Shown one piece after another: positions 14,527 to 58,000 of a stretch of 64,000 nucleotides of DNA; the stretch's first letter is position 1, and each line of letters begins with the position of its first letter. The translations under genes and the position numbers were made by a program. The notes under the pieces were generated by a model. It made no database searches. It was given only the letters and a program-made list of their open reading frames with translations, and had not been told where the DNA came from. This DNA comes from Glycera tridactyla (Eukaryota): contig OZ286476.1 in the NCBI GenBank assembly GCA_965644265.1, forward strand, positions 46,872,001-46,936,000, in the 5' to 3' direction.

Positions 14527-15121
14527 TCAGTTGGAAACTATACAATCTGCAAAAGCAATTATCCGGACCTAGTTCTGTCAACCACCTTTGGCCCATTTCA
14601 CTGAGAGTGTAGATGCACCCAGAATGGTGTAAGTGTTTCCAGTCACCAATTTGATAGCACTCATCAGTTAGTGAAATGGGCCCCTGATCAGCTGATAGCA
14701 TAGTTCATGGAGAGCACATAAATCACTGCAAGTGAGATTACCAATTTAATTGTAAATTGATTTTCACTTGTGAATGCCGCTGTGATCAGCCCTGCCAGCC
14801 CACTGCCAGTCAGGGATGAACCAGAAAAAAATTTGGTCCCATGACTTTTTGCTTAAGACAGGTTTTACTGTACACCGACACCAGTTTGCATTTGGCCTGC
14901 ATTCGCCGAATATTTGTCAGACTTTCATTGCTCCTCCTGTTCTAAAGATGATTTCAGCGATATATCACCGATCTCAAAGATCAGCTCCGATTAATCAGAT
15001 AAGCACCTGAAATCGCCGATTAAATTGATCTTCCCATCGATCGACTGAACACTAGTATTCACTGGGGCTGAGAATTGGCCCCGACTTTGGAGATCATTTA
15101 GGCAGGATTCATTGCAATTGA

Positions 15122-15399
15122 CAGGGATGTGATTCTTCCGCGGATCCGCGGATTTCCGTGTTTCTGGTGACAATCAACAGGCCATGTACATGACAGCAAA
15201 GAGCCTTCTCTGTTGAGTATTTTGGCTTTTAGATCATGAAAATCAGACCAGTATTAGTGGATAGAGAGCACAATGTTTGTATGGAGTTCTGGTAGCCTTC
15301 AGTCACCAGTTGTTTGGGTTTGTTGATCCACAAAATCTTAGTGTAAGTGCTCCCTGTCCGGTTTTCAGTGTTTTTGTTTGTGAGCCAATCACATCCCTG
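15122..15399. mobile_element. hAT-like MITE (family G) with 6-bp TSD
   Basis: TIR CAGGGATGTGATT/AATCACATCCCTG; TSD AATTGA; homologous to 56258-56489 and 59157-59414. Confidence 0.85.
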
Positions 15400-15599
15400 A
15401 ATTGAATAATTGATTTTAATCAATGTTTGGTCAACTTGAAGACAACAGATTTGGATGACATGGGGAGGGGAGGGGGCATGGCTTTAGGATTAGGAAGTGA
15501 TGAGTTGATCTGAAAAAAAAGATAGTTGCATGATGCTGGAGAGTGTGGGATAGATAAAAACATATTCAAGAAAATGATGACAAGGATATGTTTCATGTA

Positions 15600-15760
15600 C
15601 AGTCGATCCTCTCTATAAAGACCGCCTTCTGTCACATCAAAATGTGGTCTTTATAGGGAGGTGGTGTTTGTAAGGAGGTCATTTACTGTTGAAAATACTA
15701 CCATGATGGCAGCTCAGGGTGGTCTTTATAGAGAGGTGGTCTTTTGAGGAGGTTCGACTG
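15600..15760. mobile_element. MITE family B
   Basis: TA-flanked TIRs. Confidence 0.85.
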
Positions 15761-18700
15761 TATATGTATGTTTGTTCTGGAAAAATGCATCTACAATAAT
15801 ACATTCTATGCTNNNNNNNNNNNNNNNNNNNNNNNNNNNNNNNNNNNNNNNNNNNNNNNNNNNNNNNNNNNNNNNNNNNNNNNNNNNNNNNNNNNNNNNN
15901 NNNNNNNNNNNNNNNNNNNNNNNNNNNNNNNNNNNNNNNNNNNNNNNNNNNNNNNNNNNNNNNNNNNNNNNNNNNNNNNNNTGTGTGTGATCTGGAAATA
16001 TGTCTCTGACATGATTTCTATCACTAAAAAAATGTGTGTGTATGTGTGTGTGTGTGTGTGTGTACTGTGTGTGTGTGTTGGTGAATTTCTGTTGATGGAT
16101 GAAGACATAAGGGCATGAAGGTGATGCGCCAAGAGGGTTGGTGGGCTATATTACATATGTATTCCAATACTACAGCTGAATTAGTTTCAGGTAATTTAAC
16201 TTGAAGATGGATGGACTTCGCTAACTCCACTTGATAGTTAATGGCTCTGGTAGGACATGAAAAAATGTTTGTTGCAGAAACTAATCGTTTCAGAAATATA
16301 GCGTTTATTGATTTCACAAGTTGTGAAGAAGATCATTCGTAAGATTCAGTAATTCCTCATTTTCGAAATATTATTGTGACAGGCTTTGGCAAAAGAGTTT
16401 TTTTACAGAAATTATAAATCACCCATTTGGTTTCGGAATTTAGTGGAACCTGCATTGAGAGACCACTCAAATGTCACCAGAAAATGGTCTTGAAACAGGT
16501 GGTCCTTCATTGGAGGGGCATTTTACAATGTGAAATAGGAGAGCTGGTCCACATGAATGGTGTCCAGGCAGCAGAAAGATCTCTCATCATGGATCTCTCA
16601 TCACAGGTTATGAAGCGGGATAAGCCACATGAAATAGGAGAGCTTATTCTTATTATTACTCGGACTTGGTTGCAAAAGTGGTGATCGATTAATCGCCCTC
16701 AGTAGCAAGTGATGATGGATCATTCTCACCACACTGATATTGCAATGACGAAAGTTTGCCGTAAAATTCTAACTCTGTACTCATATTCACTGGTGATAGA
16801 CACTGATGAACACATTGAAAATTACCAATTCTACTCCAAATGATCTTTTTTCTGTCGATTAGAGCGCAATATTCAGTTTTCTTGTACTTTGTGTGCTAGC
16901 TGAAATATTCAGCTGCAAAGTTGCAGATCAGTGAGAAACCTGCGTATTGCAAATAGGGACGAAATTATATTCCACACAAATCCTTGATTATTCAATTGAT
17001 TGTAAACTTTCATGATTAATCTATCAGATCGAATCTCTTAACGATGCACTAATCGGGTAATTGTCGAAGCACTTATCCTTATCGCCTCCGAGAAATGTCA
17101 CAGACTTCACAGTAATTTCCAGGTTATCCTCTGATCTTCTGTTAGTGTCACAGATTTGGCTCAATTGGATGAGATTCTGCTCATAAATCGCAAGATTCTT
17201 CCAGGTCCTGCTGGGTACATCCTCGTGACGGAGACAGATTGATAGAAGTTTGAAAACACTTCCATCACTTGCAGTAAGGTAATTTTTCAGAAAACACCTC
17301 ATTGTTTGCGAAAACAAGTCTGACTGTCTGACATGTGAGACGGAAATTCTCAGTTGTCAGACATGAACTATAATTCTGTCTGACTATTTTGTCTGTGTCG
17401 AATTTAGTTAACTGGCAAACTGGTAAATCACCACTTGAAGGGACAGAGAACAAAATGGTGTATAAGGACAGGTGATTTGTGAAAAACCAGGTATTTCGGC
17501 TAATCCAAATGTATGATGAAATCTGACAAATGTCTGATGGTCGGTTGAGTTGTCTGATAAATTTTCTGACATGGCTGAAACTTCTCACATATGCTGCCAT
17601 GGAAGTCTTTTTGTCAGCCCATGGCGATTGCTTTCGTCAGAATGAGTATGTTGGGGTGTGGGTTGCAGTGAGGCTGCAGCATTCCGAGGACGTTTGAGAT
17701 GGAAAAAGTGACAGATATGTAAGCTTGGAAATGTTAGCATCAANNNNNNNNNNNNNNNNNNNNNNNNNNNNNNNNNNNNNNNNNNNNNNNNNNNNNNNNN
17801 NNNNNNNNNNNNNNNNNNNNNNNNNNNNNNNNNNNNNNNNNNNNNNNNNNNNNNNNNNNNNNNNNNNNNNNNNNNNNNNNNNNNNNNNATCCTTCCCATC
17901 CAGTGATTTATTGGTGTTGTAAAGTTTAGTTATAGTCGCCAGTTTAAAGCATCAATCGTAGTCAGCAGAAAACGACATGAAATATCCATCAGCACATCCT
18001 GCCGCTCATACTGCCACTCTTTCACCAGCCCCAACACACTCACAGGATAATCCCCAGCTAGGCCCGGCTAGGCCGACCTCACAGAAAATCCCACAGAAAA
18101 ATTGCGCTCAGTGACCAGATTCACTAAAGTCAAAATGTACCAAGAAAATCCGTGAATACAGTGAAACCTGTGACAAGAGACCCAACCCCTGATGAGAAAC
18201 CACCCTTGAGATATTATCCAGATTTCCCAAAGAAATTATGACCTTTGTGCTCATCCGATTTTTTGTCCCTTTCTTGTTGTATTTTCCAATACTGTATTTA
18301 GGAGGCCAAGACCTCAGAATTTTATCACGGTTCTGGCGAATAATAGCAATGTCTCCGAGTGAAAATCCATCTACATGCATGTAGACTCGATGTAGGTCTC
18401 TTTTGATGTATTGCCTTTTTTGGGTAAAATTCTGAGTGATTATTTACCATGTGATCGCTTGCTAGCATCGATGGAAATATACATTTGGCTCTCACCACAC
18501 AGTCACCTGAATCAATATTCATGATGAAGCTCTAATGAAAGACCACCTGTCTTGAATAACCAGTTATTCGTGCATTTCAAGGTGGTCGCTAATCATGAAT
18601 TTTACTGTATAACTGGAATATGCNNNNNNNNNNNNNNNNNNNNNNNNNNNNNNNNNNNNNNNNNNNNNNNNNNNNNNNNNNNNNNNNNNNNNNNNNNNNN

Positions 18701-39110: not shown

Positions 39111-40140
39111 GATTCTCTGTTTGCAGATCCTGCCAGATTCAGAGGTGCACACGTATGCTGCCACGTTACCTAATAAAGATGATTCTCTGTTTGCAGATCC
39201 TGCCAGATTCAGAGGTGCACACGTATGCTGCCACATTACCTAAAGATGATTCTCTGTTTGCAGATCCTGCCAGATTCAGAGGTGCACACGTATGCTGCCA
39301 CGTTACCTAATAAAGATGATTCTCTGTTTGCAGATCCTGCCAGATTCAGAGGTGCACACGTATGCTGCCACATTACCTAAAGATGATTCTCTGTTTGCAG
39401 ATCCTGCCAGATTCAGAGGTGCACACGTATGCTGCCACATTACCTAAAGATGATTCTCTGTTTGCAGATCCTGCCAGATTCGGAGGTGCACACGTATGCT
39501 GCCACATTACCTAAAGATGATTCTCTGTTTGCAGATCCTGCCAGATTCGGAGGTGCACACGTATGCTGCCACATTACCTAAAGATGATTCTCTGTTTGCA
39601 GATCCTGCCAGATTCGGAGGTGCACACGTATGCTGCCACGTTACCTAATAAAGATGATTCTCTGTTTGCAGATCCTGCCAGATTCGGAGGTGCACACGTA
39701 TGCTGCCACGTTACCTAATAAAGATGATTCTCTGTTTGCAGATCCTGCCAGATTCGGAGGTGCACACGTATGCTGCCACATTACCTAAAGATGATTCTCT
39801 GTTTGCAGATCCTGCCAGATTCGGAGGTGCACACGTATGCTGCCATGTTACCTAATAAAGATGATTCTCTGTTTGCAGATCCTGCCAGATTCGGAGGTGC
39901 ACACGTATGCTGCCACATTACCTAAAGATGATTCTCTGTTTGCAGATCCTGCCAGATTCGGAGGTGCACACGTATGCTGCCATGTTACCTAAAGATGATT
40001 CTCTGTTTGCAGATCCTGCCAGATTCAGAGGTGCACACGTATGCCGCCACATTACCTGATAAAGATGATTCTCTGTTTGCAGATCCTGCCAGATTCGGAG
40101 GTGCACACGTATGCTGCCACGTTACGTAATAACGATGAGC
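39111..40140 (+). repeat. Tandem array of 67/70-bp units: 14 full copies plus the true exon start, each holding the hyccin exon-2 acceptor and 5' exon sequence
   Basis: Unit gattctctgtttgcag-ATCCTGCCAGATTC(A/G)GAGGTGCACACGTATGCTGCCAC(G/A)TTACCTAA(TAA)AGAT. Unit starts at 39111, 39181, 39248, 39318, 39385, 39452, 39519, 39586, 39656, 39726, 39793, 39863, 39930, 39997, 40067. Confidence 0.95.
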
Positions 40141-40187
40141 TCATCAACGCCCTCTACAAACTGTTTGAGGAGGATCTCAGCCAAGAG
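40083..40187 (+). CDS. HYCC1/FAM126: Hyccin/FAM126 coding exon 2 (ILPDSEVHTYAATLRNNDELINALYKLFEEDLSQE)
   Basis: Acceptor tctctgtttgcag, donor GAG|GTGGGT, 105 nt, phase 0-0. Aligns with the recalled human [34 protein letters not shown]. Confidence 0.85.
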
Positions 40188-41684
40188 GTGGGTGTTAATG
40201 TTCGACAATAGGCCATGAAAATATGATATGAAACTGAGTGTATAGTGACTGAGAACATTTTATACAGATTGATGCATACACTTTCTGAGTATGGTTTTCA
40301 CCACAGTTAATGAGCATACTCTTGTATTTACAGTCCCTGTACATTGATGTGCTCTAGGCTAAGGGTTGCTCAACCAGCACAAACTCATCAATGTTTTGTT
40401 GGGGCAGGTAGTTTTATCAGTGTGCCTGCCTGATGGGCAGGTACTTGGATATTATACGATCCATGCTTATTTGCTGTAGGATAGGTGAAAATGTCTGGGA
40501 CTTGTCTCACTAATGTTGCTGGAAATGGAATTTCGGAATTCAGATCTAAAAGATATCNNNNNNNNNNNNNNNNNNNNNNNNNNNNNNNNNNNNNNNNNNN
40601 NNNNNNNNNNNNNNNNNNNNNNNNNNNNNNNNNNNNNNNNNNNNNNNNNNNNNNNNNNNNNNNNNNNNNNNNNNNNNNNNNNNNNNNNNNNNNNNNNNNN
40701 NNNNNNNNNNNNNNNNNNNNNNNNNNNNNNNNNNNNNNNNNNNNNNNNNNGTCTGTCTGTCTGCTCATCCATTGATCCATCCATCTGTGCATCTTCCTAT
40801 GTCAAATTGGAACAGGAGAGCTATATAGCTCCAGTGATTGGAGATGAAGGCTCAAAATTTATCATTTCTCCCAGTGGGCTGGCAACCATCTTTGGAACTG
40901 GAAAATGTCCCAATGATTCAAATTCCAGAGCTTCTTTTTCCTAGTTCCTCAGAAGATCTGATACTCTGAAAAATAGCTTGGGACAGTTGTCTCATTCACC
41001 TCCCTACTCAGAAATTTTGCTGCGTTCAGATGACAGTTGATTGGTGTAAGCTGTGAATTGATGGGATGATAAGGTGGATGGCTGGTGCCGTGAGTGCGGG
41101 AATGTTACCTGCCCTGAAGCCTGGCAGACACAGGTGAAAACCCCCGGCAGCGGAAATCAACCATTAGTGAATGGAAAAAAGATTTCTCAATAGCAGTGTG
41201 GCACCAACGCCATAAATGCATTTGTTGTGTTTGCTTGAATGGTGATCAAAGATATTTATCCTTTTTGATCGGGACGCGTCACAAATCACCTTCGAATGAC
41301 ATGGTTTTCTATCAACAGCTTCGGAAGCTTGCTCTTTACCAGAAACGATGGATCTGGATTCCCTCATCTGTTTGACAGTCGGATTACGGATAATGAGAGA
41401 TAATCCTTTTTGTCAGACGGTTTTTATGTCATTCGTAGTGGTACCCATTGTAAGATTTCACTGAAAACTCCCTGGCCGTTGATTATACAGTGAAACCTGT
41501 GATGAGAAACCACCCGAAATGTCACCAGAAAGTACTCTCTCAAAAGAGATGATCTCTTGTCGAAGGTATTGACCATGTTGGAAAGGGAAGCTGTCATATA
41601 GAAGGGGTCTCACTGTGTACGTCAAAATTCATCACTAGTATGATATATTTGTAAATATTTTGTTCTTGGCTCTAAGACCATCCA

Positions 41685-41861
41685 TGATGAACGTAACTTG
41701 ACCTACTTTGGAATGATTTGTTGAGACGTTTTGACCACTCTGCGAGCAGTCTTGATCCAAGCTCACTAATCCATCACGTGATCAAGACTGCTAGCAGAGT
41801 GGTCGAAACATCGTGAATCATCTCAACAAATCATTCAAAGTAGGTTAATCTACGTTCATCA
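41685..41861. mobile_element. Palindromic (foldback) MITE
   Basis: Long imperfect inverted arms tgatgaacgta...tacgttcatca; partial relative near 9630-9720. Confidence 0.7.
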
Positions 41862-41906
41862 AGTATGATGTAGTTCATAATTCCTGGAACCTGATGAGAT
41901 ATTCTC

Positions 41907-43511
41907 TAGGCCTTGGATTTTTCCATTTTAAAAAATGGCCAATTCTGTGTTATTTTTTGGCACATTCTGCGAAACACAGAATTTCTGCATTTTTCCGCAG
42001 CGCCGGCGCCAAAATCAGTAAAATTCTGCAAATTCCATCATAGTAACGTTAAAAATTGTAGAAAATAGCCAAATTCTGTGAATTCCATGCACTGCAGGGC
42101 TACTCACAATCAAATTCTGTGTTATTTTTTTGAGGCCAATTCCGTTTTATCACGGGGAAAATCCGTGCTGTTTTTACGGAATAAGATGAATTCAGTGTTA
42201 TCCGTTTTGCAGAGATTTCTGCTTATTCTGCATTTTTCGCGACCAGCGACCGCGAAACCTCCATTATTCTGTGTTTTTCGTGTTTGATGCCAAGATGATT
42301 AAACCGTTACTGCATATACACCAGTGTCGCGATGAGCATCAATGTACGTGCACCAGCTTGCCATGACAGGGCTTGCCCTATTGCCCGGGGCAAGTAAAAT
42401 TGGTGTTTGGGCAAGTGCTTGTCCCGGCCTCATCTCGATGGCAAAAATGACCCAAGAACTAACCAAAATCTGTGAAAAAACATTCGATAGATGTATTCCT
42501 TACGTTCTTTTTGTGTGGGGGCAAAGGATAAAATATGAAAATACGACGAATATTCGCCAAATGAGAGCCGGATAAGAGTGGAATCACCCAGCCCCGATCT
42601 AGAGTGTCAATCCCGAATTCTCTATGATGACTTTCATGTGGAATTTCTGCCATCTTGCCGAGAAATCTGGTCGAAACTGCATGAATCATATAGTGTTATA
42701 TTCAAAAGAACATCCTTTACACAATTGTGTAGACAGCATGTCGATATATCAGATAGTTTCTTCACAAATTGAAGCGCAAGTTGCCGGCCGGCTTTGACAA
42801 CTAGGATGCCAGACTGCGTCTCAAACAGGTGTTCCACAAATCGCATTTCAAAGCTAATTTAACCAAGAAATATTGAGGTCACAGTAGAAACGATCGTATG
42901 AATGAACTACGGGATATCCGATTGTGTTATATCCATGCAATGAATTACTTAAATCCGTTGAATATTCGCCAGAAACAGTGGAGTTGTCAAAAGCGGCAGC
43001 TTAATCTCTGAGCGCAGCCATGTTGGATCTGGCCTTCTTCCTGGAGCAAGTTTGGTGACAATTTTCGACAATTTTGCGTTTGACTCATCCAATTGTTGAC
43101 AATTTGTCGACAATATGACGAGTCGAATGCAAGATTGTCGACAATTGTCACCCAGCCGAACTAGGCCCTGGCTTTTATTTGGCGGGAAATTTGAACCTCG
43201 TTCAAGACGTGATCTCAGGGCGAGACTTGAGGCGAGATGTCAACATCAAAGATGGCGGCACCGGTTGAAGAAATATACGCATGTAGACGACTTTCGAAAT
43301 TCCGCTTTTACTGTGTTTATTCGCTGTGAATTCGGTGTTAATTCTGATTCATTCTGCATCCTCCTACATGAATCTTTTCCGTTTTATCGATTTTTCGCCG
43401 TGGTATAATGTCAAATTCTGCGAATTCCGCTTTTTCACTCAATTCCGTGTTCTATGGCCCATTCTGCGAATTCCGCCGTGATGCAGATAACACGGAAAAG
43501 TCCAAGGCCTA
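41907..43511. mobile_element. hAT-like element with 6-bp TSD, subterminal AATTC(T/C)G repeats and nested or captured interior
   Basis: TIR TAGGCCTTGGA/TCCAAGGCCTA; TSD ATTCTC; many aattctg/aattccg motifs near both ends. Confidence 0.75.
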
Positions 43512-45318
43512 ATTCTCTCTGAAATCCTGATTTTCAGTCATCTTTTCATTATGTTGTAGCTGGGGTGAGGTATTGTTGTCTTTCAAAATGAAAAATCCTC
43601 AGTTGTGACTAGCTTTCTCTGGAGACAAAGGTATTCTCGAGAAGAACAGACATTTCATTTTTGATAAGTAGACAATTGTCTCCTCCCAACTCAATGTTTT
43701 ATGCTTTGATGCTCTTCATCCTGGTATCCATGATTGTTCCACATGTTATAATAAATAAAAGTCGTTCAATCCAACCCCGTCAAACAATCAACATCATTCA
43801 GGATTCAGTTGGATATGATCACCTGGTTGGACCAGCAGCAGTGCATTCTGGGTCTGTTGAGATTGGTGTACAGATTTCAGTTCCATCACCCACCACCAGT
43901 CTCTGTTGGCATCATTTGTTGGATAATTGTAAATCAAGGTGCGCTTCGATTGTTTTGAGCAGGTGGCCGCTCAGTACCGACTGGTAAGCGAAGAAACATT
44001 TGTCGCACCAGAATGTAGTTTTTGGATGTTTGCATGCAGTCACTCTGCAAGACAATGCCGAACAAGTCTCACAATGCGGGATCGAGGGGGGGGGGGGGGG
44101 GGGTGCAGAGGGGGCAGAGCTTCAGATCTTCTAAGTGGATGGTGGCCCATAAACTAAAAATATCATCCCCCCCCCCCCACATAAAACCATGGGTCATCTC
44201 TTCATCAGTGGCTAATATGAACAAAATAAGCTGGGTCAGTTGACCCATAGTAGGAGATATTGATGGGTCAAAATGGGGAAAACAAGCCATGGGCCTAGGC
44301 CTACCAACAATCTGAACCTCCGAAGAGGACCTCCAGTGGTGTTGGGAATCATTTAATCAGAATCTAATTTGGTTGAGCAATTGTAGTTGCTGGTAAGTCA
44401 AGACTCAAAGAAGTGATTTTGAGACGTGGAGTTATGAGTTACACTGTAAAACGACTCACCAGATATTGGAGAGAGAAAGATGAATCTCTATAAAAACCTT
44501 GCTTCTGTTGCATCAAAAAGTGGCCTTTATGGGGATGTGGTCTTTATAGAGAGGTCCTCAACTGTTGAGATTACTACCACACTTGCAGCTCAGGGTGGCC
44601 TTTATAGGAGGTGTTCCTTAGAGCAGGTTTGACTGTGTTTAAGAGAATCGTGACTGGGTCATGATTAATTTCGAAAAAAATCCATTTAACAATGAGAATT
44701 ATCATGCTAAAAACTGAATGCAATAAAATGGACTCCAACAAAGTTGAATCAAAACCCAATTTGATTGACCAAATTGATTTTTGAGCAAATTAACTTCAAG
44801 GATTGTAACAGTTGGAATATTCTTTTTCCAGTTAGTGATTTCAAGCTACTCTTGCTGTGCCCAATGAGGTATGAATATGCAAAATTCCATCTCCAATGTT
44901 AGGCATACCTGTTCGGTCTGTCATCATTTGCAAAAAACGCTGGTGCAACCAACTTAGTATGTGACACTTCTGTTTCATGATGACACCTTGACACCAAAGT
45001 TCGGAGTCTCCTTGGTTTATGATGAGAAGCTCAGTAATTCCAAGTACTTGCCTAAGTTGGAGGACACCAGAACTTTGGTGAAACATTATCTGCGTGATCT
45101 CGGAGTGTCGGTCGAGGTCGAGCATACGTACCCTCTGGTGGTGTGAATACAGATGCTTGAAGATCAGGCTGAATGCTTTCTTCTCCTGTAGGCAAAGACA
45201 AAACTACCAACACTCGTCCTTTTCATCGAATATCAGTCAAAATCACACTGATTCATCATCATTCATTGTTTGTTAGCTATGGGTACAGTGAAACAAGCAG
45301 CAAGAGAACTCCCAAGTA

Positions 45319-45495
45319 CAGTCAAACCTGTCTATAAAGACCGCCTTCTGTCGCATCTAAAAGCGGTCTTTATGGGCAGGTGGTCTTTATAGCGAAGTCA
45401 TTTACTGTTGAAAATACTACCACAGTTGCAGCTTGGGCGGTCTTTATAGAGAGGTGGACTTTATAGATAGGTGGTCTTTAGAGCAGGTTCGACTG
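45319..45495. mobile_element. MITE family B
   Basis: TIRs and internal repeats. Confidence 0.85.
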
Positions 45496-45833
45496 GCCCT
45501 TGACCGGATTCTCCAATGCATTCACCCCGGCCGGAGAGAACACCCTAGGCCAATTCAGGCCACCCCAAACCATGATGGTGTATTTCAAAGGCCACCTGTC
45601 TGCATAGACCACTCTTTGGTCCAACCAAGGGTGGTCTTTTTGGACAGGTGGTCTTTGTGTAGAGGTTGGTCACTGTAGAAATACTTTGAAATTATCATGG
45701 CCACAGTCCAAAATGCCTTCATAGACAGATGACCTTTGTATAGAGGTGGTCTCTCAAGCAGGTTTGACTTTACCTATGCTGAGAGACTTCCTCTGTTGAG
45801 AAATCATAACTGTTGCTATTGATTGATTGACTA

Positions 45834-45870
<37 letters not shown>

Positions 45871-48077
45871 GCACTCTCGTCATGACATACAGTATCACCT
45901 GATGGCTATTTCTCTATGTATGATTCTCAGATCATGGTCTATACATGCAGTCAAAAATGATGCCGATTTTACAAAAAATATTCAAATATTTCCAAAAATT
46001 GAATGAAAAATCTAAAGTGAGATATTGCTGGATTTGGTTGGAAAGTTCTGAAACAGCTCCTTGTACTTTTGAGAATGTGTTTGAGGTACGATTCTCCAAG
46101 AATGTTGCACCATTTCATTGGCATCATACTAGATATTAGTCTGCATATTGAAGGGTGAAAGTTCATGTCACTCACAGTGCTGTTACAAAACACCTTGAGC
46201 TTTCATGAATCATCTCACTCCTTCTGTTAGTTTTGATGTCTTGCATGATAGGATTGAAAGACACATGTAAGAGTTTCGTAATTGCTTAGAATCTTCACAG
46301 CCAGCTCCGTTTTATCACCAATGATAGCAGGCATCATGCAGAGGGCGTGGGTAAACTTTGTCAAATCCAAATGTGACGCGCATGTTTCACGCGAATATAT
46401 CGTCATTTCTCACTCGATCTGAGTTTCGATGGCACAAATTGTTTATATTATACTTCGCGCGATCATTGAAGCTGGTTTCAGATACCCTGCTTGCTTTTGA
46501 AGAGGATCCACTCACATTTTATTACAATTTCTGCCATTATCGGCTGATCTTCTGTATGTGAATTGATGGAGATACTTCCGCTGCACTCACCATAAAACCA
46601 GCATGAAATCAACATATTTGGTGTGCTATGTTGAAATATACAAGGGAACTTCATCAAGATTATATTTCCAGTCACTGGACATATAAAAATGTCTGTCACT
46701 CACTTTTATTTCAATCTGAAGTGAATTTGCGATGCGAGGGCATGTACCAGCCACAGTTGGGCTTGATAGACTTTAGTGAGTGTGGTTGCTGGCTCCCTCA
46801 GCTCTCCATCACTGGTCACTGGTACACCTTTGTAGATTGCATCCCACTTGTCACCCACACTAGAGGATGAACTTGTAGATTCTCAAATCAATGCTATTGA
46901 ACCTGTCTACATAGACCACCCTTGGTTGAATTGAAAAGTTGTTTTTGTAGAAAGCTTCTTTTCTTTGAAATGTACTATAAAGGTTGCAGATTTTAGACAA
47001 TGAACTAGAGGGGCCACATTGGATTTTCAATTTTACACATTTTCAGCGACTTCGAGCAAAATTAATCAACATAAGTTGGCCAAAAACGTGGGCTAAGTTA
47101 GCAATACTAGTTGGCCAGGTTGTGGCTCTGTCGTGAACTCAGATGCTGGTTGTAAGGGTTGAGGTGGGGGTGGGGGTGGGGTGGGTGGGGGTGGAGTCCG
47201 TGGGAAATCAGAAGCTGGTGAACAAATGTGATGGTGGCTGCAATATCACCCATATTCATTCGATACTTCTGATTTCTGGAGAAGATAGATGCTTGATATC
47301 ATCCATGCACATTCCACCCTCTTCTACCGTACAACTGCCCTCTCTCTCCCCTATTTTATTATGAGGTTGAGCCGAGGTTTATGATTTGTGAGATGGTGAG
47401 ATAATGGTGGGGATGATTGGAAGTGAGGGAGTGATGTTTATGAATGCAGTAATGAGAATGGGATAAATCCAATTGTATGACAGAAGCAGCGGCCGATATG
47501 ATGAATGATGCCATTACGCCATCATCTCGTGGGGNNNNNNNNNNNNNNNNNNNNNNNNNNNNNNNNNNNNNNNNNNNNNNNNNNNNNNNNNNNNNNNNNN
47601 NNNNNNNNNNNNNNNNNNNNNNNNNNNNNNNNNNNNNNNNNNNNNNNNNNNNNNNNNNNNNNNNNNNNNNNNNNNNNNNNNNNNNNNNNNGGATTGCATC
47701 TCTATCAGTCTGATTATGTCAGTGTGCATGTATGGTTATGACCGACTGTGCTATACAGTGAAATTTGCTGTTGGGTTTGCTGTATGTCACCCCAAAATGG
47801 TCCTTCAAAAGATGTGGTCTCTCATCAGAGGTATATTTCACCGTGTCTGATAAAAATGGGAAAATGTAAACATATCTCTTGTAAGTGGTCTCTCATCAGA
47901 TTTGACTGTATGTATCCCATTCTCAATCTGGTTATTTCTTCAGTTAGAATAGCTGTGAACTGATATACAGTCAAACATGCTCTAAGAAGCCACCTGTCAG
48001 GAAGACAAAAAGAGGCTGATAACAGCAGGTGGCTGTTCAGTATGGTGACTGCTCATGACAGGTTAGACTGTGTGGTA

Positions 48078-48252
48078 CAGTGAGACCTGCAATGAGACCA
48101 CCCTACATGACACCAAAAAGTGGTCTCTCAAAAGAGGTGGTCTCTCGTCGGAGTTATATTTGACTATGTCAAATAGAAAAGCTTCCCTGGAAAAGTGATC
48201 TCCTGTCAGAGGTAGCCTCTCATTGGAGGGTCTCTCGTCGCAGGTTTCACTG
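48078..48252. mobile_element. MITE family A
   Basis: TA-CAGTGAGACCTG...CAGGTTTCACTG-TA. Confidence 0.9.
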
Positions 48253-49339
48253 TATTTATATATTGATGTGAATCAGAAGTGGTGGCTGAGTTAGAAATAT
48301 AGGCTAGATTAGAAGTCTGAAGATGATTGGCAGGTTAGTTATATGCTCGATCTTCTCTCATCACCATCCACACACTTGATGGAGCTAACCATGACATGAT
48401 TCATTTCTCCAATTTTTACCGTTTTTCCTTCCTCAGTAGATGTTGCATCCATCAGATTGGCTTGGCCGACAGTGATGTATGAATCGATTGATTAATCCAA
48501 TTGCATTACTTTCCCTGTGAACCATTCATGGATTATATATGTGTGGTGTAGACAAAGCAAAAACGTCCTACATCAATTTTTGCTGGAAAGTCAGGACAGA
48601 ATCCCAGTGAAGAAATATATCTACAGGCTCATGCACAAATATCAATCATGATTTTGACTTATTTGCCTTCATCAAAATGAGAGTGACTGCTCATTAGAAA
48701 TCCCCAGACCATCTGAAAGGAGAAGCTATGATTGCCAGTTATTTGATACAATCCAGGTGTATCAGCAGAATCAGTATAATTAGGGATTGAATTGTACTTC
48801 ATGTCATGATGGCACTAATCTTCGTTGAGGTCGTTTTTCAACAGTTTAGCTGCTATGTGAGCAGCAGTATCGATTTCCGAAACTACTGAAGTCATATAAA
48901 TCGAATTCTTATCACAGGTGTCCAGTTCATGATGCAGCTCCTGGTAGTACATGTATTGAGACGATTCGTTCAGAAATCAATTTAATGATCAAATTGGGTT
49001 TTCTACTGATCAGTGTTACTTTATCAGAATCGATTTTTCTGTTTCCATTTTCAGCAGGACAGAACTGGTTATTAGGTATATTTTTCCTAGAATGATCAAG
49101 TCCTAGTGATTATTTTTCAAGATTTTTTCATTTATCTTCCACTCTCCAGCATCTTTTTACTGATGAACTTGTGCCTTCTCACTCCCCAAGTCATGTCAGT
49201 CACTGTCCTCCATGCGTCAAATATGTCTCCTTCAAGAATTGACTGAATATTGATTATAATAGATCAATCAATTGAAATTAAACCCAATTGATTGATTCTC
49301 AAAATAGGTAGCGATTCCTAACCCTAGCTCCTGGGTTAG

Positions 49340-49540
<201 letters not shown>

Positions 49541-50709
49541 TAAAGCTCATCAACAGATGAGACAGCATACCTGGTGAAAGTAGATTCTCGGCACTCAGAG
49601 TAAGGAAGCTTTCACAATACATTTGAATCCTTTCATCAGCCATTGATGAACATGATCTTCAGAAGGAATCAAGTGACCTCCTGGCGGAGGTGTGTTCATG
49701 TGATGAGATCTCCTGAGGGAGTGTCGGCCCTGGTCCCGATTGAGGGTTGGCTGTCTTCTGGTGATGTGCATGGACTCAAAACTCAGACAGCAGACATCTT
49801 TTGTCTTCACCACCATTTAGATTCATATAAAGTCAAACCTCCTCCAAAGTCCACCTCTCTCTTGAGACCACCTCTACAAAGGCCACCCAGAGCTGTGAGG
49901 GGGTAGTATTTTCAACAGTGAATGACCTCTCTATAAAGACCACCTCCCTATAGAGGCCACATTTTATGTGACCAAAGGCGGTCTTTATAGACTGTAGCAT
50001 ATTTTGGTGACTGGCAACTCCAGTAATTCAAATTGAATTGATACCTTTATTTTATTTTTCTGACCAATACACGGGGACTTGTTTTTCACTTTTGCGAGAC
50101 AGTGCCAATCTGGCCTGACTTTGGAATCCATCCACTCTGTTATCACCTGGGAAGTCTATATTTTCCTCAGTTCTAATTCTTGTGGGAAGTAGTCAATGTA
50201 ATATTAAATGCTGAACTTGCAATGAGTGCATCAAACATCTCAGCAAAAGACATCAACCAACGTTCATTTCTTGCAAGTATTCTATCTCCGTCCTTACGCC
50301 ATGTTGTGCCAAAATTATTGCTTGGACATTTGGACAGAAAACTCATTAGGTCTTCCGGCATGATAAATCGTAACGGACTCAGCATGCCTGTGCTTCTAGT
50401 GGCGCCATCTATTTTGACGTCATTGTGATGAGAAACTGTCAATGCCGGTTATGCATCAGCTGCTCGGACAGGAGAAATGATCGTTGGACGAGCTGGTGGT
50501 AGTTTATCAAGAAACCTTAGGAAATACAACAGTTGGCCCAGTTGGTAGCAAAAGCTGCCCAGGAAATCAAACATAGGCCAGCTAGTAGCAATTTAGGTGG
50601 CCAATGAAGGATTTGTTTTGCTGCGATGGCTGATATCTGATATTTTTATGTTGGAGCTTGCACTTCTTTGCCTCTTTGATGGCAGTCATCCGTGCCTTGC
50701 TTACAGCTG

Positions 50710-56667: not shown

Positions 56668-57296
56668 TATAGGGCTGTTGGTGTTTACATGGATATATCC
56701 ATGTTTATTTTGGATTTTGATGTGACAAAAAAGCCCCCAAAAAAGCGGGATGAATATGGTAAATCTGAGAGAGAAGAGCAGTTGGTGAGAGGCTCCTGTA
56801 TTCAACCACACTCGCTGCATTGTAAATATTTACAAAGATGCTTTTTTCCTTGGACCCATTGGTTGACATCAGCTTGAGACCGAACGAGGGTATCCATGAT
56901 GAAAACTTGACCGAATGCTCAGGTCAGGTCTACGCACTTCATCTCGGAGGTCGGGGGTCAGGCGGCGATAAATTAAGTGGCAATGTGATGCGGGCTTGTC
57001 TGTCCCTGCCTTGGCCACAATCGCTGATGTGCCACCCTGGCTTCCCCCCGAAATGATAGATGAGACACTAGAACAATTTACCACTTCTTCACCTCTATTG
57101 CTAGAGAGTCTGAGCTAGGGGACCCTGATATATATTGTAGACATTGCAATGGGATTATTCCATTCTTTGTGAGATCACACGGTTTGATTTTTCAATCGTG
57201 ATCTTTGTCTTCAAAATGATCGATTTGGTCCTCCATAAGCTGAACATAGTTTCATTTGATTGAATTTGAGAAATTGGCCAGGACCATGCTCCGTTG

Positions 57297-58000
57297 AAAA
57301 GCATTCTCTTCAGGCTTGAATTTTAATTTCCAGGCTGTTATGGCCAGTACTATTCTTTGTTGGGAAGCATTCTCTTTGGGCTTGAATTTCAATTTCCAGG
57401 CTGATATGGCCAGTACTATTCTTGATTGGGAAGCATTCTCTTCAGGCTTTAATTCAAATTTCCAGGCTGTTATGGCCAGTACTATTCTTCATTGGGAAGC
57501 ATTCTCTTCAGGCTTTAATTCAAATTTACAGGCTGATATGGCTAGTACCATTCTTTGTTGGGAAGCATTCTCTTCAGGCTTGAATTTTGATTTCCAGGCT
57601 GTTATGGCCAGTACTATTCTTTGTTGGGAAGCATTCTCTTTGGGCTTGAATTTCAATTTCCAGGCTGATATGGCCAGTACTATTCTTGATTGGGAAGCAT
57701 TCTCTTCAGGCTTTAATTCAAATTTCCAGGCTGATATGGCTAGTACCATTCTTCATTGGGAAGCATTCTCTTCAGGCTTTAATTCAAATTTCCAGGCTGA
57801 TATGGCTAGTACCATTCTTTGTTGGGAAGCATTCTCTTCAGGCTTGAATTCAAATTTCCAGGCTGTTATGGCTAGTACCATTCTTTGTTGGGAAGCATGT
57901 TATTCAGGCTTGAATTTCAATTTCCAGGCTGTTATAGCCAGTACCATTCTTTGTTGGGAAGCATTCAATTCAGGCTTGAATTTCAATTATTTTCCAGGCT
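57297..58000 (+). repeat. 66-bp minisatellite, about 10.6 copies
   Basis: GGAAGCAT recurs every 66 nt from 57363 to 57957; this explains the 22-aa periodic ORF 57316-58029. Confidence 0.95.

Follow-up and report, generated by a model that had tools for sequence, protein, structure and literature searches.

The 64,000-nucleotide stretch of Glycera tridactyla DNA analysed here, called the window in the following, contains the beginning of a hyccin gene on its forward strand, and in front of the second coding exon of this gene the 3′ splice site is present in fifteen tandem copies. The coding part of the first coding exon (MCSKVIKEWLSEYK) extends over 30689..30730, with the ATG at 30689, and was located from the sequence and by tblastn of the orthologues P0004 and P0142, which match 30689-30733. 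It is followed by the donor AAG|GTAAAA at 30731. The genuine exon 2 (ILPDSEVHTYAATLRNNDELINALYKLFEEDLSQE) occupies 40083..40187, has a length of 105 nt and phase 0/0, and is followed by the donor GAG|GTGGGT at 40188. Its acceptor is the only one that leaves the frame open, the exon is colinear with the orthologues, and it gives a weak match to the Pfam Hyccin family (profile positions 2-29). Exon 3, at 49379..49513 and ending in ...NAKR, lies between the acceptor ttttacag| and the donor CGG|GTAAGT; it matches Pfam PF09790 with 63.8 bits (cut-off 25, E=1.8e-17) and the FAM126A/Hyccin chains of the PDB with E about 4e-11. All three exons, like the features of the array described below, are on the forward strand.

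Within the window, exons 1-3 span positions 2-76 of the 321 positions of the PF09790 profile, and tblastn of the orthologues against the window found no further hyccin exon up to 64000. When exon 1, exon 2 (from 40083) and exon 3 are joined, the resulting 94-aa product can be aligned gap-free over both junctions with some 30 hyccins, to which it is 50-67% identical. Among named hyccins, the best matches are lophotrochozoan, namely those of chiton, octopus, abalone and nemertean.

Structure of the Array

An exact-motif search finds GATTCTCTGTTTGCAG fifteen times across 39111-40082, with starts at 39111, 39181 and so on up to 40067. The last copy, at 40067..40082, is the intron end (polypyrimidine tract and CAG) of the genuine exon-proximal acceptor, as assigned by motif search and frame analysis, and only this copy continues into unique exon sequence. 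The other copies belong to 14 decoy units of 67 or 70 bp, which fill 39111..40066 and were delimited by TRF, exact-motif search and unit comparison. In each of the 14, the intron end of 16 nt, again polypyrimidine tract and CAG, is joined to a copy of the start of exon 2 of 51 or 54 nt. The spacing is 70 bp in units 1, 3, 8, 9, 11 and 14 and 67 bp in the other eight, the 67-bp type lacking one TAA of the TAATAA found in the 70-bp type. TRF reports a period of 67 with 14.9 copies (95% matches, score 1757) and, in addition, a 137-bp super-unit in 7.5 copies, which equals 70+67. A 36-nt probe taken from the beginning of the exon has fifteen matches, all of them inside the array, in the 64-kb window, where shuffles give an expectation of 0.

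All 15 acceptors are identical from -16 to +14. Outside this core the decoy units fall into seven sequence types, such that the sequence calls for at least seven decoys plus the true copy, the copy number of 14 being read from the assembly. None of the N runs touches the array; the nearest one is at 40558-40750. A preliminary description of this DNA had proposed a 15-fold amplified acceptor with 14 decoys, each made of 16 nt of intron end and 51-54 nt of exon start, and the motif search, TRF and the inspection of all 14 decoys bear this out. It had also argued from the unit variants against a pure assembly artefact, an argument that is strengthened by the finding of seven unit types in an ordered block pattern.

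Just 5′ of the array, TRF and the sequence reveal GATTC-rich short tandem repeats with periods of 9, 17 and 29 (39003..39091), a tract that marks a slippage-prone region. Next to it is a 15-bp proto-duplication of the acceptor tract, GATTCTGTGTTTCCA / GATTCTCTGTTTGCA, at 39096..39126 (TRF period 15, 2.5 copies), which contributes an extra AG at 39110-39111.

The comparison of the units with each other and with the true copy allows the history of the array to be ordered. Units 8 and 9 resemble the true copy most, with two differences each. Of the edge units, which in a mirage with concerted evolution would stay out of the homogenisation, unit 14, adjoining the true copy, is the most divergent one, with six differences, and unit 1 is identical to unit 3. 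The units form blocks, with A-type units at positions 1-5 and G-type units at positions 6-13. Compared with the true copy, 14/14 decoys carry CGT>CCT and AAC>AAA (R>P and N>K). The orthologues carry R and N/H at these positions, and the true copy keeps the conserved TLRNNDEL; since the orthologues match it at both positions, the true copy represents the ancestral state and the decoys the derived one. The presence of R>P and N>K in all decoys also means that these are unconstrained copies, and changes shared by all of them imply an order of events in which one duplication was followed by two substitutions in the upstream copy and then by amplification of this copy. Of the seven columns with substitutions, five coincide with CpGs in the true copy, and this CpG-biased pattern looks like ordinary mutational decay, not like sequencing error. 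The junction between units reads AAAGAT|GATTC, which suggests slippage at a GAT microhomology.

Reading Frames and Splice-Site Choice

Joining exon 1 in silico to each of acceptors 1-14 leads in every case to a stop codon 111-114 nt downstream (TAA in 13/14, TGA in 1/14), and the frame is kept only with acceptor 15, that is, with the exon starting at 40083. The earlier expectation that all 14 decoys shift the frame into a stop within about 125 nt is thus confirmed, and so is the claim that only the acceptor before 40083 gives intact hyccin, for which the frames are joined by the colinearity with about 30 orthologues. That both unit lengths are 1 mod 3 is a trivial result, because the two types differ by 3-bp TAA slippage.

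According to the usual rule for NMD, a stop is recognised as premature when it lies more than 50-55 nt ahead of a downstream exon junction. The stops reached from the decoy acceptors sit 58-944 nt upstream of the exon-2 donor, hence the transcripts in question would qualify for NMD by the 50-55-nt rule, all decoy products having the stop at the distance from the junction that the rule requires.

We now consider the branch sites. A branch-point-like TACTGAT, whose role as the ancestral branch site is suggested by the yUnAy consensus, is found at 39092..39098, where the preliminary description had placed it; its A at 39097 is 29 nt upstream of the first AG copy. By the AG-scanning rule, intervening AGs restrict a branch site to the nearest downstream acceptor, and with the many AGs of the array TACTGAT can serve copy 1 only. 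Since the intronic part of a unit amounts to only 16 nt, the branch sites of acceptors 2-15 must be located in ex-exonic sequence. Every unit has a branch-point-like motif; in the 70-bp units it is CTAAT, and in unit 14 CTGAT. The latter, at 40056..40060, is a candidate for the branch site that the productive acceptor uses; its A, at position 40059, is 24 nt upstream of the exon base 40083. It is correct, as had been pointed out, that the ancestral branch site is attached to the first, unproductive copy; the emphasis on this was incomplete, however, because the units hold CTAAT or CTGAT motifs of their own, and the ancestral site on copy 1 is for this reason not decisive.

The CGT>CCT change shared by the decoys converts GTAAT into CTAAT, a full match to yUnAy located 24 nt ahead of the next AG. 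This G>C change might conceivably be compensatory; it improves position -3 only.

The need for strong discrimination between acceptors, which had also been noted at the outset, is real: as the 15 sites do not differ between -16 and +14, whatever sets them apart must lie further away. Copy 15 alone has a good donor, GAG|GTGGGT, 105 nt downstream and a purine-rich, enhancer-like tract, GAGGAGGA, beside it. In the units, no 9-mer matches the donor consensus well. The best one, CAC|GTATGC, lacks a G at -1; it is present in every unit, 26 nt after the acceptor, and its use would create a micro-exon of 26 nt. As the flanking introns measure 8-9 kb, exon definition is the expected mode of recognition, and it would favour the acceptor that is paired with the GAG|GTGGGT donor. 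It is important to point out that use of acceptor 14 gives an exon of 175 nt and use of acceptor 13 one of 242 nt; both are within the normal size, such that these two acceptors are not excluded by exon definition alone. Copy 1 has the longest pyrimidine tract in addition to the ancestral branch site, and some use of its acceptor would not be surprising.

Two other forms of splicing were considered here and discarded. NAGNAG or tandem acceptors, in which AGs a few nt apart share one branch site and tract, do not apply to a spacing of 67-70 nt, and recursive splicing is ruled out because no donor is restored at the junction AAG|ATCCTG.

Hyccin Genes of Other Genomes

Boundary arrays are also present in other hyccin genes. 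In the hyccin locus of a relative (L005, a contig of ENA ERZ26222911), exon 2 is also 105 nt long with the same boundaries, and no acceptor array precedes it. Instead, a 46-bp donor-side unit is repeated about 87 times at 2062-6056, over about 4 kb of intron 2; the unit consists of the last ~8 nt of exon 2, the GTGAGT donor and about 32 nt of intron. The Mytilus edulis locus (L004) has two arrays. At 15027-16226, 24 copies of TTTGTAG|AC and 13 TAA variants end at the exon-2 acceptor, and at 36402-37208 a 61-bp unit, made of the end of exon 3 and a GGTAAGT donor, is repeated 13 times with 11 exact donor copies. The deposited Mytilus edulis FAM126 model CAG2203193.1 reads through this donor array and repeats FIPTLQWVYLSSLSVNGK. 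In L003, which is from another relative (ENA ERZ26052378), 10042-10262 contains one decayed extra exon-3 acceptor with about 60 nt of exon start, the duplicate being 117 bp in 1.9 copies with 78% matches. The L006 hyccin has no boundary arrays.

Two Logan transcript contigs encode the full 506-aa Mytilus hyccin, and when they are compared with L004 only exon-proximal sites are joined. At 89-93% identity to L004 these contigs come from a Mytilus congener, and the link to the L004 arrays is made only via that alignment.

The arrays of L004, L005 and L003 are at other boundaries than the array of the window or unrelated to it in sequence, and the conservation expected of regulated unproductive splicing was not found in the comparison with these three loci. 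On the evidence of these alignments, boundary arrays in hyccin genes are recurrent, lineage-specific and not conserved, a pattern more in keeping with a by-product of mutation than with a regulator specific to hyccin. Their frequency has to be read with the sampling in mind: P0001 and P0002 ranked top because their repeats score twice, and for the same reason an enrichment of arrays at boundaries cannot be deduced from the sample.

Database Searches

No Glycera tridactyla hyccin protein or transcript was found in the protein collections searched, and the 56-aa ORF over exon 2 had no match in them. The search of representative proteins with exon 3 reached a top identity of 76%. With P0004, the nearest full-length hyccin, the next-best match was at 47-49%, and with a mixed alignment that included the exons of the window and was aimed at fragments of 94-298 aa, the best match was 76% identical to the window. 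In the JGI metagenomes there were 0 matches to a 22-mer of the exon 1/exon 2 junction and 0 to a 23-mer of the unit.

Nine public runs had small word shares for 30600-40557. Four of them were aligned to 34558-40557; they matched only dispersed repeats in this interval, and the depth over 38958-40357 was 0.

The minus-strand ORF over the array belongs to no Pfam family and Rfam has nothing in 30000-50000, blanks that rule out an antisense gene or a structured RNA. A dispersed satellite with a resemblance to the exon is likewise ruled out, as the unit is absent elsewhere in the window.

Discussion

Minisatellite-like tandem duplications of an intron/exon boundary are known as mirages (PMC3087553), for which both PMC3087553 and PMC3902484 cite Canestro et al. 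2002. They have been described in the amphioxus Adh3, globin, TnC and PGBD5 genes, where RT-PCR gave regular splicing (PMC3087553; PMC3902484). The units of the Adh3 mirage measure 10-72 bp, and that of BflGb6 comprises the 3′ end of the intron together with the 5′ portion of exon 2, with 3 and 6 units in two haplotypes (PMC3087553). Minisatellites are length-polymorphic, and the BflGb6 mirage was mis-assembled in the draft genome (PMC3087553).

Judged by its sequence, the hyccin array fits the published definition of a mirage. Its units are arranged head to tail and have minisatellite size (TRF period 67, 14.9 copies), in 14/14 they combine an intron end, a splice signal and exon sequence, and the authentic copy, number 15, stands at the exon-side end of the array and keeps the frame and the conserved residues. 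The unit size is within the 10-160 bp range of mirages, and as in BflGb6 the array is of the acceptor type at exon 2. The differences from the amphioxus cases concern the host, which by best protein matches is a lophotrochozoan and not a cephalochordate, the 14 spare units compared to the 3-6 units of BflGb6, and the intronic part of just 16 nt, owing to which the branch sites must be ex-exonic. Furthermore, the hyccin array is known here from genomic sequence alone, unlike the amphioxus mirages with RT-PCR data.

Two human loci offer further analogies. CBS 844ins68 is a 68-bp duplication of the intron 7/exon 8 boundary, in which the distal 3′ site is selected and G runs are implicated (PMC1802585). 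Here too a 3′ splice site is duplicated together with the start of an exon, with 68 bp compared to 67/70 bp in hyccin, but CBS has a single extra copy. A distal choice of the CBS type through G runs was rejected, because GGG is absent from every hyccin unit. In F7, the 37-bp VNTR of IVS7 spans the exon 7 donor, and the pseudo-sites are functional yet silent, the exon-proximal site being chosen (PMC1557585). The likeness is in a minisatellite element that spans an exon boundary and provides identical spare sites. The F7 array, however, is on the donor side, where a 5′-to-3′ scan reaches the true site first, whereas the true hyccin acceptor is reached last, and scanning logic of the F7 kind can therefore not explain the choice.

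Decoy exons are a further parallel. Decoy exons that promote intron retention are reported from human cells (PMC6097662; bioRxiv 10.1101/258897). They resemble the hyccin repeats as unproductive intronic sites that could engage flanking splice sites, and differ from them in being conserved, regulated, single cryptic exons with both sites, the hyccin repeats being acceptor-only and not conserved.

In our judgement, the hyccin array is probably a mirage minisatellite, i.e. a tolerated by-product of repeat instability and not a regulator. A 70-bp segment over the intron-1/exon-2 boundary would have been duplicated once, probably by slippage at the GAT that the intron end shares, as a microhomology, with exon position 52-54. 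Two substitutions would then have arisen in the upstream copy, and the mutated copy would have been amplified to 14 units by slippage or unequal exchange, these units still decaying, presumably, mainly at CpG sites. Functionally, we infer that the whole array is now part of intron 1. The spliceosome, following the exon-definition model, would take the copy to which the remainder of exon 2 is attached, and the branch site of the productive acceptor would now be supplied by the ex-exonic CTGAT of unit 14. The 14 spare acceptors would mostly be ignored, and transcripts with a premature stop that result from occasional decoy use would be cleared by NMD.

The preliminary description had instead suggested a copy-number-dependent splicing/NMD rheostat. 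This idea finds no support, since mirages and CBS splice normally and the array is absent before exon 2 of L005. An attenuator, in which the decoys capture transcripts that are then lost to NMD or intron retention and the array length sets hyccin output, could build on the acceptor core and branch-like motif common to 14/14 decoys, on the position of all decoy stops, which precede the next junction by 58 nt or more, and on the existence of the decoy-exon mechanism in human cells, as reported in PMC6097662. We nevertheless consider it unlikely. Precedents of the same architecture splice normally (PMC3087553; PMC3902484; PMC1802585), L005 has no such array and the other hyccin arrays are at other boundaries with unrelated units, and the units decay at CpGs without sign of constraint. 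Only a slim chance is given jointly to two more speculative readings. In one, the array would be active, its 14 acceptor and branch modules binding U2AF/U2 and titrating or delaying the splicing of intron 1 (8.4-9.4 kb), with the array length tuning hyccin output via NMD or intron retention. In the other, exon boundaries in this lineage may be seeded preferentially into minisatellites by splicing- or transcription-linked mutation, not by random duplication and selection.

The remaining explanations concern the assembly, the allele and the fate of the units. That a real array has been mis-assembled in length, or that two haplotypes have been concatenated, would agree with the zero read depth over 38958-40357 in the four public runs and with the mis-assembly of BflGb6 in its draft genome (PMC3087553). 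It is improbable, as collapse or stutter would not give seven unit types in ordered blocks and a 70+67 super-unit, and the N runs do not touch the array. We think it quite improbable that the window represents a segregating hypomorphic or null allele, in which the expanded array impairs hyccin splicing and is tolerated only in heterozygotes: the units have diverged by up to six differences, and the array is thus not brand new, which has to be set against the length polymorphism of minisatellites (PMC3087553) and the fact that copy 1 holds the best intron-side signals. Intron gain or exonisation under way, with a decoy recruited as a mini-exon via CAC|GTATGC, is a model that has been proposed for mirages (PMC3087553), and the donor-like GTATGC is present in every unit. 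Here it seems extremely improbable, given that the 26-nt insert shifts the frame, the donor-like site has no G at -1 and no open frame runs through the units.

The hyccin array is one more case of a little-known, already published class of repeats, and together with the arrays in other hyccin genes it shows that mirages are not confined to amphioxus. Gene prediction is led astray by boundary arrays of this kind, as in the FAM126 model deposited for Mytilus edulis. The array also offers a clean natural experiment on how a 3′ splice site is chosen: its 15 acceptors are identical from -16 to +14 and differ in distant context only. Should decoy use in fact scale with copy number, an essential subunit of the PI4KA complex would be under a heritable control that mutates fast.

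Additional Repeats in the Locus

Short dispersed repeats in intron 1, at 38358-38557, 35158-35357 and 35558-35757, have a summed contig depth of up to about 15,000, counted over runs of three organisms at 85-95% likeness. They are probably fragments of abundant transposons common to related species. The middle of the same intron has a 20/40-bp minisatellite with 14 copies at 33714-34007, away from any exon boundary. In intron 3, a 66-bp minisatellite with 10.8 copies extends over 57275-57988. It has a 237-aa open frame running through it, to which no Pfam family matches at the cut-off, and each of its units contains an acceptor-like TTTCCAG motif; this minisatellite may be a mirage of an unrecognised exon.
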